Assembly (NCBI RefSeq): GCF_000009045.1
Contig: NC_000964.3
Span: 3,844,001-3,908,000 of the forward strand
DNA: 64,000 bases
Direction of reading: 5' to 3'
From: Bacillus subtilis subsp. subtilis str. 168
GTDB taxonomy: Bacteria; Bacillota; Bacilli; Bacillales; Bacillaceae
Notes under the pieces: generated by a model
The model's input: the letters and a program-made list of their open reading frames with translations, nothing else
Database searches by the model: none
What the model was told of the DNA's origin: nothing
In this document: positions 3,853 to 58,116 of the stretch, piece after piece
How positions within the stretch are numbered: the first letter of the stretch is position 1
How the letters are laid out: every line of letters begins with the position of its first letter
Program-made: the position numbers and the translations under genes

Positions 3853-4725
3853 TTATTTCACAAACCCAAGCAGCATTTCACGGATGATTTTGCTGGCTGT
3901 GTTTGCCGTTTGCTCTGAGTGGTCGTATACCGGCGCGACTTCCACTAAATCAGCGCCCTTTACGTTTACCTCTGAACGCGCAATTTCATGGACCGATGCA
4001 AGCAGTTCTTTAGACGTGATGCCGCCGGCGTCAACCGTTCCTGTACCCGGTGCGTGTGCAGGGTCTAATACGTCAATGTCAATTGTGACATAAACCGGAC
4101 GGCCCGCCAGCTTCGGAAGCACCTCTTTCAGCGGTTCAAGCACTTCAAATTTTGAGATGTGCATGCCGTTTTCCTTCGCCCATTCAAACTCTTCTTTCAT
4201 GCCGGAACGGATTCCGAATGAATACACATTGTGCGGTCCGATCAATTCTGCCGCCTTACGGATCGGCGTGGAGTGAGAAAGCGGTTCTCCCTCATAATCA
4301 ACACGAAGATCTGTATGTGCGTCAAAATGGATAATCGCAAGGTCTGGGTATTTCTTGTACATCGCTTTAATGACAGGCCATGACACGAGGTGCTCCCCGC
4401 CCATACCCATTGGGAACTTCCCTTTTTCTAAAATGCTGTCCACGTACTCTTCAATCATATCCAGGCTTCGCTGCGGATTTCCGAACGGCAGCGGAATGTC
4501 GCCAGCGTCAAAGAAGTTCAAGTCAGCCAGATCGCGGTCTAAATATGGGCTGTATTCCTCAAGGCCGATTGACACCTCACGGATTCTGCTTGGACCAAAG
4601 CGTGAGCCCGGGCGATAGCTGACTGTCCAGTCCATCGGCATGCCGTAAAGAATGGCGTCCGCCTCTTCCCACTCGGGACGGCTCGCGATAAATACTTTTC
4701 CTGAATAAGCTTCATCAAATCTCAT
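3853..4725 (-). CDS. speB: Agmatinase
   Basis: 290 aa ureohydrolase; GGEHLVS, DAHTD and DIDVLDP metal-binding motifs. Confidence 0.97.
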   Translation of the reverse strand: MRFDEAYSGKVFIASRPEWEEADAILYGMPMDWTVSYRPGSRFGPSRIREVSIGLEEYSPYLDRDLADLNFFDAGDIPLPFGNPQRSLDMIEEYVDSILEKGKFPMGMGGEHLVSWPVIKAMYKKYPDLAIIHFDAHTDLRVDYEGEPLSHSTPIRKAAELIGPHNVYSFGIRSGMKEEFEWAKENGMHISKFEVLEPLKEVLPKLAGRPVYVTIDIDVLDPAHAPGTGTVDAGGITSKELLASVHEIARSEVNVKGADLVEVAPVYDHSEQTANTASKIIREMLLGFVK

Positions 4726-43025: not shown

Positions 43026-43748
43026 CTAGTCAGCCTCTCGTTCGGTTGCCGCATCGGGGTTCCGGTTCAGAAGGGTGATAAGCTCTGAGGCGGATACATC
43101 GGGGCGCTCGCCTGCTTTTTGATAGAGGGCCTTTATCGATTCATAGTCTTCCTTTGTATCAATGGTCAGCCGATATTGAGGGGCGCGAAATCGTTCCGGC
43201 GCCTCTAAAAACTGAACACGATAAAGAGCTGGATGATTCCTTATATATAACGTGACATGCTCCTGATATTGATCCTCCAAAGCCTGAATACGGCTGATGT
43301 CAATTAACAGGTTGGCGTTGACCACTTCGCCGCAAATCCCTAATGGGGCATTCAGGATATACGTATAATCCGAGCCTTGATCAAAATGCGCCTGAATCAT
43401 TACATCGAGCAGCTCAGGATCGACAAACGGATTATCACCTGTTAACCGGATGATGACTGACGGTTTAACAGCTTCTATGACCTTCACAAACCTATCGAGG
43501 ACACGTTCTTCGCTCCCGCGGAAAACACGAAAGCCTTGTTTGATACAGTGCGCCTCTAATATGTCGTCAGTTTCTTTGTCAGACGTGGCGATGACAAGAT
43601 TATCCCGATCCTTTTGGTAAAACGCGCTTTGCCGGACACGGTGAACGAGAATATCAAGTAAACGATTCGATCCGAGCGGCCGAAGCACTTTTCCCGGAAG
43701 CCTTGTTGAACCCATTCTTGCTTGAATGATAAAGAGAATATCATTCAT
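43026..43748 (-). CDS. spsF: Cytidylyltransferase-like (CMP-nonulosonate synthetase)
   Basis: 240 aa; IQARMGSTRLPGK and RLTGDNPF. Confidence 0.9.
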   Translation of the reverse strand: MNDILFIIQARMGSTRLPGKVLRPLGSNRLLDILVHRVRQSAFYQKDRDNLVIATSDKETDDILEAHCIKQGFRVFRGSEERVLDRFVKVIEAVKPSVIIRLTGDNPFVDPELLDVMIQAHFDQGSDYTYILNAPLGICGEVVNANLLIDISRIQALEDQYQEHVTLYIRNHPALYRVQFLEAPERFRAPQYRLTIDTKEDYESIKALYQKAGERPDVSASELITLLNRNPDAATEREAD

Positions 43749-53686: not shown

Positions 53687-54362
53687 ACAAATCCTTAATA
53701 CACCAATCAATCGGCGCCTCTCCCATTTTCTCCAAATAGGCATTCGCCCGGGAAAACGGTCTGCTCCCGAAAAATCCGTTTCTCGCAGAAAACGGGCTGG
53801 GATGCGTCGATTCAATGATAAAATGCTTGGAGGTGTCGATCCGTTCTTTTTTCATTTGAGCATGCCGTCCCCACAAAATAAAGATAACCGGCCGCTCTCT
53901 TTCACTCAGCACGTCAATAATTCGGTCCGTCAGTCGCTCCCAGCCTTTTCCCTTATGGGAATTCGCCTGTCCGCGCCTTACTGTCAGCACAGTATTCAGC
54001 AAAAGAACGCCTTGCTTTGCCCAGCTCACAAGCGACCCGTGATTCGGGATGCTGCACCCGATGTCCTGCTGCAGCTCAAGAAAGATATTTTTTAACGAAG
54101 GCGGCTGCTTTACACCGGGCTTGACAGAGAAGCTTAAACCTTGAGCCTGTCCCGGCCCGTGATACGGATCTTGACCCAAAATGACGACCTTGACATCATC
54201 ATATGATGTATAATGCAGCGCGTTGAAAATATCCCGGCTGTCCGGATAAATCGTTTGCTCCGCGTATTCCCTCTTCAGCATCTCTCTGAGCTCTTGATAA
54301 TACGGTTTCTCAAACTCTTCCTTTAGCTGATTCCACCAGCTGTCTTGTAAAAGCTGTTTCAA
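53685..54362 (-). CDS. ung: Uracil-DNA glycosylase
   Basis: 225 aa; GQDPYH, PPSL and HPSPFS. Confidence 0.97.
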
Positions 54363-54375
54363 GATTCAGGCCTCC

Positions 54376-55182
54376 TTACGAACGATGAAGTCTGGAATAG
54401 ACAGGCTCGCCATCCCAAACCATTTCACTTTTTGCTTCCCGCCTCTTCATCTCAGGCTCTTCAAGCAGGACGGCAAAGTTTTTCGTCGGCAGCTCCCCGA
54501 GTCCGTGCTTTTCACTTAAACGATCCAAATATTGCTTCCGCTTGGCGCCAAGGTCAGCAGACTGATTGTCTCCCGCGTCACTGAAGGCATAAATCACGCT
54601 GGCGCAAGGGACACGCTTCACCCGGTAATCCTTGGCCGCGCGCAAATAAAAATCCCAGTCCCAGTAATTGTGCACATCAGCATCGAAATACCCGATTTCA
54701 TCATGCAGAAAACGTCTGTACATGCTGCCCGACGGCACGTATGTAGAAAACACTCTCATATCCTCATAGTCAGCGGTATAAGCAAACAATTTCCGTGACA
54801 CTGGATACCTTGTTCCGTTTTTCTCTTCAAACGAAACTATTTCCGCATCAGAATGAACGAAGTCTGCCGTTTCTATTTCCTTTGCCATTTTCTCGATATG
54901 CCCTGGCGTAAAGAAATCATCGTCATCACACAGCATAATGCAATCCCCAGACGCCTCTTTTACACCGGCATTTCTCGCAGCCACATGCCCCGAGTTCTTT
55001 TCTAAATTGATGACAGCAATCGGCAGCTCCGGATAAAGTGCTTTGACCGGCACGACCGATTCCCCGGCATCATTCACAATAATAATTTCATACGGCATCA
55101 AGGTCTGGCGGGAAATCGACTCCAAAAGCTCACACAAAGCCGGAATCCGATTATAGGTCACAATTACGATAGAAATCTTCAT
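54376..55182 (-). CDS. ywdF: GT2 glycosyltransferase
   Basis: 268 aa; ISIVIVTYNR, NDAG, CDDDD and DWDF; RBS AAGGAG. Confidence 0.92.
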   Translation of the reverse strand: MKISIVIVTYNRIPALCELLESISRQTLMPYEIIIVNDAGESVVPVKALYPELPIAVINLEKNSGHVAARNAGVKEASGDCIMLCDDDDFFTPGHIEKMAKEIETADFVHSDAEIVSFEEKNGTRYPVSRKLFAYTADYEDMRVFSTYVPSGSMYRRFLHDEIGYFDADVHNYWDWDFYLRAAKDYRVKRVPCASVIYAFSDAGDNQSADLGAKRKQYLDRLSEKHGLGELPTKNFAVLLEEPEMKRREAKSEMVWDGEPVYSRLHRS

Positions 55183-55271
55183 GATGCTCTCCTTCTCATT
55201 TTCATAGTCATGTACTATTAAAACATATATTGGACGGGAGATCAGTGGGAATATCCTACTGAAACGGCATA

Positions 55272-55805
55272 CTACAATGATAGAAACAGCAAAGTGGCTC
55301 CGATCAGAAGCACCATGATCAGCATCAGATCTCCAAAGACATGAAAGATATCTTTCATGCGGACGCCATTCGGAAGGATAAGACGCCACAGCTTAGATTG
55401 ATAGACCGGCAGCAGCACCAGTGCATAAGAAAGACACAAAAATGTAAAAGCCGGCGGCACAAAAGCACAGCCTGCATCGTCCCAATTCATCATGATGTCT
55501 TTCATACTAGATCCATCCAATAAAAACAAAGATATCATGAGGGCTAGCAACACAAAGGACCCCAATTGAACCTCAAACAGGCGCATTTTCTGGTTATATG
55601 CAAATCGGACCGCCCAAAACCAGACATAAGCATATGAACATAGCAGCGTAAGAATGGCACCTGCTGTAAAGACGACATCAGGCAGCCGATCAAGCAGAAA
55701 AACAAAAGGCAAGCTGGCTGCCATAGCCAAGAGCATGCAGCCACCAGTAAACAAAAATACTGCCCCATGAGCTACAAAACCATATAAACAAGAGCTAATC
55801 CTCAC
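55272..55805 (-). CDS. ywdE: Integral membrane protein of unknown function
   Basis: 177 aa from the GTG 8 nt after AAGGAGG; about 5-6 TM. Confidence 0.8.
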
Positions 55806-55820
55806 GACATACACCTCCTT

Positions 55821-55839
55821 TACATAGAAATTCTATGTA
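55821..55839. promoter_or_regulatory. Perfect palindrome, candidate YwzG operator
   Basis: TACATAGAA-a-TTCTATGTA abutting the ywdE RBS. Confidence 0.65.
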
Positions 55840-55852
55840 TATACCTAAAAAA

Positions 55853-56488
55853 TCAGACAAGCTGACGCCTGCCAATATAACAGCCCATTCGGCCAAATAA
55901 CGGAAATAACAGCGTTGCAAAAGCACAAGTTCCAACAAACCAAGGTGTCAACAAGGATTGAAACAGCGCAGCAGGAATTACATTGAATAGAAAAACAAGC
56001 ATAAAAATGACGTTTGGCACCATTGAGATCAGAATCGTATGTAGAACAAGCTTTTCTCCGCGTTTTCCAAACTCCTTCACGCCTTGATACCCAATCAGCA
56101 CCCAGTAGATCATATATGCAGCTAAGATCAGCCAAACAGAAACAGAAATGCCTTTCCATACTGCTTGAACAAACGGTGATTCAAGCCATACATGCATTAT
56201 TGTAATCGCAATGCCGACAGCGAATAGGGCACTGTTACAGAAAAGATGGAACATCAAAAACGCACGAAACGTTACTGGCTGTATTTTCTTAAACGAAGAA
56301 ACAATGTCAGTTGGTGTTCCAAACGCCTGCAATAAAGTCTGCATAGCTTCCTCCTCACTCTTTCCTTCCTGAAAAGAGCGAAACAGATGATGTTCAATAT
56401 GGCTCTCAATCTCTTCTATCATCGCCTCACCCTCAGGAAGCCCTTTAAGCCCGCTTTTGATTTCGGATACATATGTTTCTTTATCCAT
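55853..56488 (-). CDS. ywdD: HAAS-like (DUF1700/permease-prefix) N-terminal domain plus TM protein
   Basis: 211 aa; EEIESHIE...GKSEEEAM...FGTPTDIV followed by about 4 TM; overlaps the ywzG stop. Confidence 0.85.
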
Positions 56489-56819
56489 TTTGTCCGCTCC
56501 ACTTCAGTATTCGGTCCATCATGGCTGAAAATACGCTCCATTCCTTCGTGCGTTCCGCCAGCACTTCTTTGCCCTCGTCTGTAATCCGGTAATATTTGCG
56601 GTCCGGTCCTTTCTCCTGCTTCTCCCAGTAGGAAGAAATATACCCTTGGCGTTCAAGCTTGTGAAGAGAAGGATACAAGGTCCCTTCTTTCATCTGCAGT
56701 TCATTTCCGCTGCGGCTTCCCATTTCTTTTACAAGCTCATAGCCGTACATCGGCCGCTCGTTCAGAAGCGTCAATACCAATATAACCGTGCTTCCCTTAA
56801 CCAGCTCACGATTTAACAT
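56481..56819 (-). CDS. ywzG: PadR-family transcriptional regulator
   Basis: 112 aa; [18 protein letters not shown] and [10 protein letters not shown]. Confidence 0.93.
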
Positions 56820-56830
56820 CTCAAAACCCC

Positions 56831-56880
56831 TACCTAGTTTTCTTATGTAGCATTTTACGAAAGCCCGTTGAGATTGTCAA
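56831..56880 (-). promoter_or_regulatory. ywzG SigA promoter with operator over the start site
   Basis: TTGACA (56875-56880)-N17-TAAAAT (56852-56857); TACCTAG-N5-TTATGTA at 56831-56849. Confidence 0.72.
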
Positions 56881-56962
56881 ATGATTCCTATAGATCTTCT
56901 ATATTGTGATACAGAGAAAATCTAACTATAATGAAAGACAAAACATGATGGAGGTTCAAGAC

Positions 56963-57778
56963 ATGTCTATGCATAAAGCACTCACCATTGCCGGCTCAGA
57001 TTCCAGCGGCGGTGCTGGGATTCAAGCTGATTTAAAAACATTTCAAGAAAAAAACGTATACGGGATGACCGCCTTAACGGTGATCGTTGCGATGGACCCA
57101 AACAACAGCTGGAACCATCAGGTATTCCCGATCGATACTGATACAATCCGCGCCCAGCTTGCAACAATTACGGACGGCATCGGCGTGGACGCCATGAAAA
57201 CAGGAATGCTGCCAACCGTTGACATTATCGAGCTTGCGGCAAAAACGATCAAAGAAAAACAATTAAAAAATGTGGTAATTGACCCGGTTATGGTTTGCAA
57301 AGGTGCTAATGAAGTCCTTTATCCGGAGCACGCCCAAGCCCTGCGTGAGCAATTGGCTCCGCTAGCCACTGTCATTACGCCAAACTTGTTTGAAGCCAGC
57401 CAGCTCAGCGGCATGGATGAACTAAAAACAGTTGACGATATGATCGAAGCCGCGAAAAAAATTCACGCACTCGGCGCTCAATATGTCGTCATTACAGGCG
57501 GAGGCAAACTCAAACACGAGAAAGCCGTTGATGTTCTCTATGACGGAGAAACAGCGGAAGTCCTTGAAAGCGAAATGATCGATACGCCTTATACACATGG
57601 CGCAGGCTGTACATTCTCAGCAGCCGTGACAGCGGAGCTTGCCAAAGGTGCGGAAGTCAAAGAAGCCATTTACGCAGCGAAAGAATTCATCACAGCGGCC
57701 ATTAAAGAATCCTTCCCGCTAAACCAGTATGTTGGTCCTACGAAGCATTCTGCACTGCGCCTGAATCAACAATCATAA
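56963..57778 (+). CDS. pdxK: Pyridoxal kinase (ThiD-like)
   Basis: 271 aa; GSDSSGGAGIQADLK, DPVMV and HGAGCTFS; RBS GGAGG. Confidence 0.93.
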   Translation: MSMHKALTIAGSDSSGGAGIQADLKTFQEKNVYGMTALTVIVAMDPNNSWNHQVFPIDTDTIRAQLATITDGIGVDAMKTGMLPTVDIIELAAKTIKEKQLKNVVIDPVMVCKGANEVLYPEHAQALREQLAPLATVITPNLFEASQLSGMDELKTVDDMIEAAKKIHALGAQYVVITGGGKLKHEKAVDVLYDGETAEVLESEMIDTPYTHGAGCTFSAAVTAELAKGAEVKEAIYAAKEFITAAIKESFPLNQYVGPTKHSALRLNQQS

Positions 57779-57814
57779 AAAAAGGGGCTGCCTTACAGAG
57801 AGGCAGCCCTTTTT
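57777..57814 (+). terminator. pdxK terminator
   Basis: GGGCTGCCT-N7-AGGCAGCCC-TTTTT. Confidence 0.85.
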
Positions 57815-57837
57815 AAATCACCGAAGACTTTTCACAG

Positions 57838-57862
57838 AAAAAACTGCCGATCCCATCGGCAG
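57838..57862 (-). terminator. sacP-sacA-ywdA terminator
   Basis: CTGCCGAT-ggg-ATCGGCAG plus T6 on the minus strand. Confidence 0.82.
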
Positions 57863-57867
57863 CCTGT

Positions 57868-58116
57868 TTATTTGATTTTTAAATTGTTTGCAGATTTCCT
57901 CAAAAATGTTTCTATCGACTGAACAAAAAGTGCATATTCCTTCATTTGTTCATATGCCCGCGTGAGAATTTCCGCCGTTTCACTGTGCGGCGTTGTTCCG
58001 CCAAGCATTTTTTTCAGCTGAAGCAGCACATCCTTATATTCTTCTCGCTTATCTTCAACTTGGTTAGCAGCCTTTTCCAAACATTCCGGTGTTATCTTCT
58101 GTTCATGTATATTCAA
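57868..58116 (-). CDS. ywdA: Small helical protein, WXG100-like pattern
   Basis: 82 aa from TTG after RBS AAAGGAG. Confidence 0.85.
   Translation of the reverse strand: MNIHEQKITPECLEKAANQVEDKREEYKDVLLQLKKMLGGTTPHSETAEILTRAYEQMKEYALFVQSIETFLRKSANNLKIK

Follow-up and report, generated by a model that had tools for sequence, protein, structure and literature searches.

Introduction

Short PadR repressors that control their own membrane-protein operons are an established theme of bacterial gene regulation, and the ywzG-ywdD locus of Bacillus subtilis 168 is very probably a further case. Here, we describe this locus and its two palindromic sites, O1 and O2, from a computational analysis of a window of 64,000 nt (NC_000964.3, positions 3,844,001-3,908,000), i.e. 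the whole stretch of DNA analysed, to whose positions all coordinates below refer. In Listeria, the lltR (lmo0599)-lmo0600-lmo0601 operon is built in a similar way, a short PadR autorepressor being directly followed by Lmo0600, a protein with several membrane spans and an N-terminal DUF1700/HAAS domain, and in a DNA-binding mutant of lltR these genes are derepressed about 100-150-fold (PMC6624303). The Listeria operon continues with a DUF4097/Toastrack protein, whereas YwdD has a different body of four transmembrane (TM) helices; moreover, the Listeria study describes no second operator or cargo promoter and defines no operator sequence (PMC6624303). The PadR protein PtvR of Streptococcus pneumoniae also represses its own membrane-protein operon (ptvRABC); it differs in being induced by vancomycin and in affecting vancomycin tolerance. 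Another short PadR, bcPadR1 with BC4207, is cited as repressing its own membrane-protein operon (citation in PMC5050560). In PneumoWiki, a "PtvR / YwzG, membrane transport" regulon is given with RegPrecise as its source. As RegPrecise thus lists a YwzG regulon, the prediction of such a regulon is probably not new.

The locus also matches a more general proposal. On computational grounds only, the dyad formed by a HAAS domain and a PadR-like winged helix-turn-helix protein was put forward as a widespread alternative to two-component signalling, with the hypothesis that HAAS relays a membrane signal to the neighbouring PadR protein (Ravi et al. 2024, PMC11237479). HAAS domains comprise three helices, the third one kinked at a GxP motif with its groove, and always adjoin standalone PadR genes (PMC11237479). 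The pairing of the two families noted in an earlier, sequence-based reading of this DNA (hereafter the original prediction) is as described in the literature, and ywzG-ywdD shares with the dyad a standalone PadR gene and a GxP-kinked three-helix HAAS domain fused to a multi-TM domain. That study, for its part, names neither YwzG/YwdD nor an operator, and contains no two-operator layout and no exchangeable cargo. We found no experimental test of communication from HAAS to PadR in the literature.

For the mode of DNA binding, the nearest reference is cdPadR1 of Clostridioides difficile (5DYM), the closest solved structure to YwzG, which in electrophoretic mobility shift assays (EMSA) binds two inverted-repeat boxes, TACT(N11-12)AGTA, in its own promoter, at -25 and -52 bp from the gene (PMC5050560). 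With an N11 spacer, such a box has the TAC-N13-GTA geometry of the YwzG motif, and the -25/-52 boxes resemble sites at -28 and -54 of three YwzG loci. The inner half-site differs (TACTAT vs. TACATAG), and for cdPadR1 a broad regulon is proposed and no HAAS partner is discussed. The operator of B. subtilis PadR and Lactococcus lactis LmrR is reported as ATGT-N8-ACAT. Both are winged-helix dimeric repressors like YwzG, and LmrR belongs to the same PadR-s2 subtype with a Trp at an apparently equivalent position; they differ from YwzG-YwdD in being released by small molecules and in having no membrane partner. This canonical PadR box is absent from the ywzG locus, its sole match in the window being far off, at 4076.

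From the comparisons reported below, we consider it probable that ywzG-ywdD forms a HAAS-PadR signalling pair with two operators, in which YwzG would repress both its own operon and a downstream cargo gene and YwdD would relay a membrane signal. Two features seem to go beyond the accessible literature: a layout in two tiers, in which O1, on the regulator operon, is imperfect and O2, on an exchangeable cargo, is perfect, and a family-wide TAC-N13-GTA rule. With TAG/CTA or TTG/CAA as inner parts, this rule could be used to annotate the regulons of YwzG's PadR clade. Furthermore, B. subtilis carries a minimal version of the system, with a 112-aa repressor, a 211-aa putative sensor without extracellular domain, two defined operators and one small cargo gene, so that the HAAS-PadR hypothesis becomes directly testable in the best Gram-positive model organism.

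Results and discussion

Conservation of the two palindromic sites

The core of the motif, TACMTW-N7-WAKGTA (12 positions), has exactly two perfect matches in the window, and both are found at the ywzG locus: O1 (56831-56849) and O2 (55821-55839), neither of which is assigned to a strand. When up to three mismatches to the full pattern are tolerated, the window contains 4 matches vs. 0.89 expected. To place these sites in a wider context, 80 loci encoding YwzG relatives were fetched (cited below by L numbers where needed), from which we compiled an orthologue set consisting of the window and 29 Bacillaceae loci (61-97% protein identity, 190 kb in total). In these 30 loci, the pattern with at most two mismatches occurs 72 times, compared with 1.0 in first-order Markov randomisations. 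The original prediction had staked itself on conservation of the motif upstream of orthologues, and a site was indeed detected 28-34 nt upstream of the PadR start in 29 of the 30 loci, the upstream regions of different genera being otherwise unalignable. In 29 loci out of 30, the HAAS gene is also followed, ahead of the next gene, by a site or a tandem pair. O2 is under selection: 8 of the 10 species in the B. subtilis group share its half-sites unaltered, whereas the spacer and the flanking bases vary. These comparisons support the view that the 19-mer is a genuine and deeply conserved regulatory site tied to the PadR clade of YwzG.

The operators often come in pairs. Behind the HAAS gene, tandem sites 17 bp apart share two bases (L011:3998-4033, L012:3985-4020 and other loci with a DUF4153 cargo gene). 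At three loci (L020, L028 and L066), sites at -54 and -28 of the PadR start, i.e. with an offset of 26 bp, bracket the -10 hexamer, and three Rossellomorea-type loci possess a third site behind the DUF4153 gene. A Thalassobacillus locus (L010:3001-3900) encodes a YwzG orthologue with 70% identity and carries sites at -28 and +412.

Organization of the ywzG-ywdD locus

All genes and features of the module are on the minus strand, pdxK being divergent on the other side. The first gene, ywzG (56481-56819), encodes a PadR family winged-helix regulator of 112 aa (short PadR-s2 type; Pfam PF03551). The start of ywdD (55853-56488) lies within the end of ywzG, the overlap comprising 8 nt (ATGGATAA). 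Its 211-aa product is a membrane protein with a predicted cytoplasmic N-terminal HAAS domain (Pfam PF22564) and four TM helices joined by very short loops; the HAAS-coding part (56300-56476) corresponds to residues 5-63 and includes the G57-T58-P59 kink motif. Then comes the cargo gene behind O2, ywdE (55272-55805), which starts with GTG at 55805 and encodes 177 aa with about five TM helices, for which the Pfam scan gave no family match. It is preceded by a Shine-Dalgarno sequence AAGGAGG (55814-55820) with an 8-nt spacer to the GTG. The next gene, ywdF (54376-55182), encodes a GT2 glycosyltransferase (Pfam PF00535) and is followed by ung.

The promoter of ywzG consists of a -35 hexamer TTGACA (56875-56880) and a -10 hexamer TAAAAT (56852-56857) separated by 17 nt. 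With 11 out of 12 matching positions, this TTGACA-17-TAAAAT (56880-56852) is the best promoter match in a scan of 5.5 kb, and sigma-A-type promoters whose -10 ends 1-9 nt before O1 are found in 27 out of 29 orthologous loci. The first base of O1 is located 2 nt past the -10, and O1 therefore covers the expected +1; its last base is 11 nt before the ywzG ATG. On the coding strand, O1 reads TACATAA-GAAAA-CTAGGTA and is an imperfect palindrome; its gene-proximal half, CTAGGTA, does not vary, and the half nearer the promoter is degenerate. O2 (TACATAG-AATTT-CTATGTA) is a perfect palindrome, located 1010 bp from O1 and directly abutting the AAGGAGG of ywdE. Thus, the anatomy claimed in the original prediction is borne out in every respect (overlap of ywzG and ywdD, promoter, both sites with their sequences, spacing and coordinates), including the position of O1 over the predicted start of transcription. 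At the end of ywdD, a weak terminator-like stem-loop (55846-55873; 7 pairs, of which 2 are G-U) is followed by a U-run. A T-run right behind the stop codon of the HAAS gene recurs in most orthologous loci, and it could equally well be a UP-like element for the cargo promoter.

YwzG as the probable binder of O1 and O2

YwzG matches PF03551 over residues 15-89 (E = 6.6e-28, 97 bits for a cut-off of 27). Its best matches in the PDB are 5dym (cdPadR1; E = 2e-20), 4ejo, 3f8b (LmrR) and 4esb, all of 108-126 aa and aligned end to end. With about 110 residues, a predicted single C-terminal helix and solved PadR-s2 proteins as its closest relatives, YwzG can be assigned to the PadR-s2 subtype.

The motif accompanies the PadR gene far beyond Bacillaceae, with perfect or near-perfect sites in loci of Gemmatimonadota, Actinomycetota and Lewinella. 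PadR genes whose partner is an FtsW/RodA-like HAAS fusion have TACATAG-N5-CTATGCA in front of them in Brevibacillus, Paenibacillus, B. safensis and Clostridia. Another Firmicutes clade displays the variant TACCTTG-N5-CAAAGTA, which contains the -35 TTGACA. In a sister PadR-HAAS clade (L063, L068-L070, L072, L077, L043 and L079), the PadR start is preceded, at about 50-70 nt, by the variant palindrome (G)TACCTTGACAGACA(A/T)AGTA, whose left half-site includes the -35 TTGACA. Because the motif travels with the PadR gene and cdPadR1 binds the same TAC-N13-GTA geometry, we are highly confident that YwzG would bind both O1 and O2. The autorepression by YwzG put forward in the original prediction is likewise well supported by comparison, as O1 lies over the +1, the relatives LltR and PtvR are autorepressors and cdPadR1 was found by EMSA to bind in front of its own gene. 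One evolved clone with a 7-bp deletion in ywzG has been reported, an observation that is anecdotal.

Two other explanations of the palindromes were considered at this point. Since the role of YwzG as the binder is drawn from sequence comparison, the two matches might in principle be due to chance, or be the sites of a different and unlinked transcription factor. The 72 matches vs. 1.0 expected, the association of the motif with the PadR gene in different phyla and at constant positions, and the in vitro binding of the homologue cdPadR1 to the same geometry make this extremely improbable. It is only slightly less improbable that the palindromes work at the RNA level, as hairpins in the 5' leader or intergenic RNA, where they could affect stability, processing or access to the ribosome-binding site. 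This explanation can invoke the RNA of O2, which is predicted to form a weak A/U-rich hairpin of 8 pairs (-6.9 kcal/mol, z = -3.4) beside the Shine-Dalgarno sequence. Against it, the RNA of O1 does not fold as the palindrome, and the left arm of O1 is located at or before the +1 in most loci. Position tables across loci also show that TAC...GTA and T5/A15 hardly vary, so that sequence is conserved and not pairing: positions 4/16 occur as C-G, A-T, A-G and C-T combinations without compensatory pattern, and O1 positions 6-7 are unpaired with their partners in most loci. In addition, the motif overlaps -35 and -10 boxes in other clades, and an Rfam scan of 54000-58000 gave no family match at O1 or O2. 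As changes in one arm are not compensated in the other and O1 is unable to fold, the palindromes would be DNA operators rather than RNA hairpins; the evidence favours this view, and the sites are positioned as expected of a repressor.

YwdD as the HAAS partner

Residues 5-63 of YwdD match the Pfam HAAS domain PF22564 (E = 7e-8, 33 bits for a cut-off of 27), and the protein also matches the NCBIfam "permease prefix domain 1" NF038403 (39 bits, cut-off 30). Among the 30 YwdD relatives, 19 match PF22564 on their own. An AlphaFold model built with 30 relatives (predicted local distance difference test score of 85) has helices at residues 3-14, 20-40 and 45-56/59-67, with the break at G57-T58-P59; four TM helices then follow, and their connecting loops are very short, with no sizeable extracellular one. 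The helical N-domain followed by TM helices, as originally read from the translation, is thus recovered by both the Pfam match and the model. G57 is nearly invariant (at least 90% of the YwdD alignment). No significant match to the model was found in the PDB with Foldseek (best E = 2.2), and a profile search of the PDB returned only designed helical proteins. The partner open reading frame (ORF; about 210-225 aa) begins inside the 3' end of the PadR gene in 28 out of 29 orthologous loci, with an overlap of 4-55 nt, a range that is uncertain in some loci because the start calls are. Such an overlap fits the production of two proteins in a fixed proportion. By sequence and model, YwdD therefore appears as a member of the HAAS-PadR dyad (N-terminal HAAS, GxP-kinked third helix, PadR neighbour and multi-TM fusion), and it is plausible that YwdD would signal to YwzG. 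In the original prediction, YwdD was a membrane sensor or a sequestering partner of YwzG, roles that none of these results demonstrates.

Genes behind O2

The gene located behind O2 differs between lineages. Cargo of the YwdE type, with about five TM helices, was found in the window, in L001-L009 and in L026, YwdE homologues being restricted to the B. subtilis group and Peribacillus. In 14 loci, the cargo is a DUF4153 protein of about 485 aa with 9-11 TM helices, a family that is uncharacterised in the literature. Three loci (L015, L019 and L021) encode a different protein of about 175 aa with five TM helices, and L018 a unique protein of 198 aa. Homology between YwdE and DUF4153 was rejected (negative BLASTP, profile-profile probability of 1%), as was homology between YwdE and the small membrane proteins of L015 and L018. 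According to these comparisons, the conserved unit is composed of the PadR gene, the HAAS partner and the operator, to which an exchangeable membrane cargo is attached. That the cargo differs by lineage while the other three elements stay supports the control of ywdE by O2. The second site had been proposed to control ywdE-ywdF-ung. The proposal is well supported by comparison for ywdE, as O2 is kept before whichever gene follows the HAAS gene. It does not extend to ung, since only the immediate cargo is conserved beside O2 and ywdF-ung synteny is limited to the B. subtilis group. As for ywdF, which is next to the module in the B. subtilis group only, no terminator-like site was found between ywdE and ywdF (55272 to 55182); the gene may be co-transcribed with ywdE, and its membership of the module is uncertain. 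YwdE shares 42-49% identity between B. subtilis and B. velezensis or B. atrophaeus (L008 and L009), compared with 88-89% for YwzG, and thus evolves much faster.

Some of the associated genes may be related to isoprenoids. A UppS-family cis-prenyltransferase gene lies 13-17 nt behind the DUF4153 gene in four loci (NCBIfam NF011405, 311 bits for a cut-off of 304), which belong to Oceanobacillus (L011:4046-6230), Ornithinibacillus (L020:4045-6238) and two Gracilibacillus (L028:4036-6239 and L066:4045-6228). These operons hint at a link with the undecaprenyl-phosphate lipid carrier. In Peribacillus (L026:2287-2973), a NUDIX gene precedes the PadR gene; its best NCBIfam match is isopentenyl diphosphate isomerase, with 68 bits, below the cut-off of 127. 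Instead of adjoining the PadR gene, the operator of this locus lies in front of the NUDIX gene, at a distance of 714 nt from the PadR start. The NUDIX gene may represent a second isoprenoid link.

Proposed mode of action of the two sites

In the mechanism that we propose, a YwzG dimer would bind the 19-bp inverted repeat TAC(A/C)TAG-N5-CTA(T/G)GTA. On O1, it would occupy the start of the strong sigma-A promoter of ywzG-ywdD and repress its own operon; as O1 is imperfect, some regulator and some sensor would always be made. On O2, it would keep the downstream membrane-protein cargo (ywdE, perhaps ywdF) off. YwdD, made in step with YwzG through translational coupling, would sense a disturbance within the membrane, whereupon the GxP groove of its cytoplasmic HAAS domain would engage YwzG and repression would be released. 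The locus is very probably a real but ordinary self-repressed membrane-stress module. A more elaborate version is unlikely on present evidence, namely a two-tier switch in which the weak O1 would ensure a basal level of sensor and repressor, the perfect O2 behind a leaky terminator would hold the cargo tightly off, and the module would sense lipid-carrier or membrane stress from within the membrane. In this version, the UppS-family proteins in four loci, the isomerase-like NUDIX protein in Peribacillus and the GT2 enzyme in B. subtilis would point to the polyprenyl-phosphate lipid carrier. If true, it would make the locus a convenient B. subtilis system in which HAAS-PadR signalling could be studied as an alternative to two-component systems.

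The way in which O2 would act appears to differ between genera. Of the 14 loci whose cargo is a DUF4153 gene, about 10 have nnTACA-17-TAGAAT (AAGAAT or TAGATT in two of them) spanning the tandem sites O2a and O2b: the left TACA of the first site corresponds to the -35, and the TAGAAT-like hexamer of the second site, 17 nt further on, to the -10. In these related genera, the tandem sites would therefore hold both hexamers of a separate cargo promoter. O2 is a single site in the B. subtilis group, within an intergenic region of 47 nt. It contains a -10-like TAGAAT (55835-55830 in B. subtilis), conserved at positions 5-10 of O2, and no ECF-type (extracytoplasmic function) promoter pattern was found beside it in B. 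subtilis. Here, O2 would either occlude a weak TAGAAT promoter devoid of a good -35 or block read-through from the ywzG promoter past the weak ywdD terminator.

Several observations weigh against the signalling pair with two operators as we present it. Beside O2, the B. subtilis group has no acceptable sigma-A -35; the best candidate is TTGTCT, separated by 19 nt from TAGAAT, a hexamer that B. velezensis has lost. The Thalassobacillus locus L010 lacks a HAAS partner gene and has only short ORFs after its PadR gene. The Listeria DUF1700 protein Lmo0600, when overproduced from the derepressed operon, is a harmful effector for which no signalling role was shown (PMC6624303). In YwzG, W94 appears to be aligned with W96, the drug-binding Trp of LmrR, which makes direct ligand sensing without YwdD possible. 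Lastly, we found no study of ywzG, ywdD or ywdE in the B. subtilis literature, and no binding, expression or start-site data.

Two alternatives build on these points. In B. subtilis, O2 could be a roadblock to transcripts leaking past the ywdD terminator, or the partner of O1 in a DNA loop over 1 kb. The missing -35, the weak ywdD stem-loop, the short intergenic region and the higher-order oligomers reported for cdPadR1 (PMC5050560) would suit this explanation, which we regard as less likely than not. Against it, the majority of the other genera have a separate promoter at O2, whose -35 and -10 hexamers are recognisable and overlap the site, and the TAGAAT of O2 is conserved. Moreover, the distance between O1 and O2 is not conserved; it varies with gene length, between about 1005 and 1072 bp in the genera compared, and therefore provides no argument for looping, which had been suggested for the two sites and is left without support. 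The other alternative leaves the two operators unchanged and makes YwzG itself the sensor of a small hydrophobic ligand, like LmrR and B. subtilis PadR, with YwdD only a co-regulated membrane effector. It is rather doubtful, a little more so than the roadblock or loop. It would account for W94 in a PadR-s2 protein, for the harmful effect of Lmo0600 and for the presence of PadR gene and sites without a HAAS gene in L010. It agrees less well with the rule that HAAS is always beside standalone PadR genes (PMC11237479), with the apparent translational coupling of the pair in 28 out of 29 loci and with the near invariance of GxP. In addition, lineages that have swapped the gene behind O2 still retain YwdD, as one would expect of a regulatory partner more than of a cargo protein. 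A HAAS-PadR pair acting on two operators thus remains our preferred reading.

Other matches and a mobile relative

Among the weaker matches to the motif in the window, the one at 43140, which has two mismatches and falls within an ORF, departs from invariant positions and was judged to be due to chance. Another, with three mismatches (56910-56928, TACAGAGAAAATCTAACTA), is located in the divergent pdxK promoter; it deviates at positions 3 and 15, which are otherwise invariant, and was likewise put down to chance, being unlikely to be a site. This match sits in the spacer of the pdxK promoter TTGTGA-17-TATAAT (56904-56932).

Finally, a segment of about 3.2 kb (L045:2095-5276; also L044 and L046-L062) comprises a TnpV gene, a PadR gene and the genes of a 434-aa protein and a small lipoprotein. 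The 434-aa protein has a divergent FtsW/RodA-like domain (PF01098, E = 9e-8), and a HAAS N-domain is unconfirmed by Pfam. The segment is 98.9-99.9% identical in 19 genomes or metagenome-assembled genomes from different families of gut and rumen Clostridia, with different flanks. It looks like a recently spread mobile cargo module.

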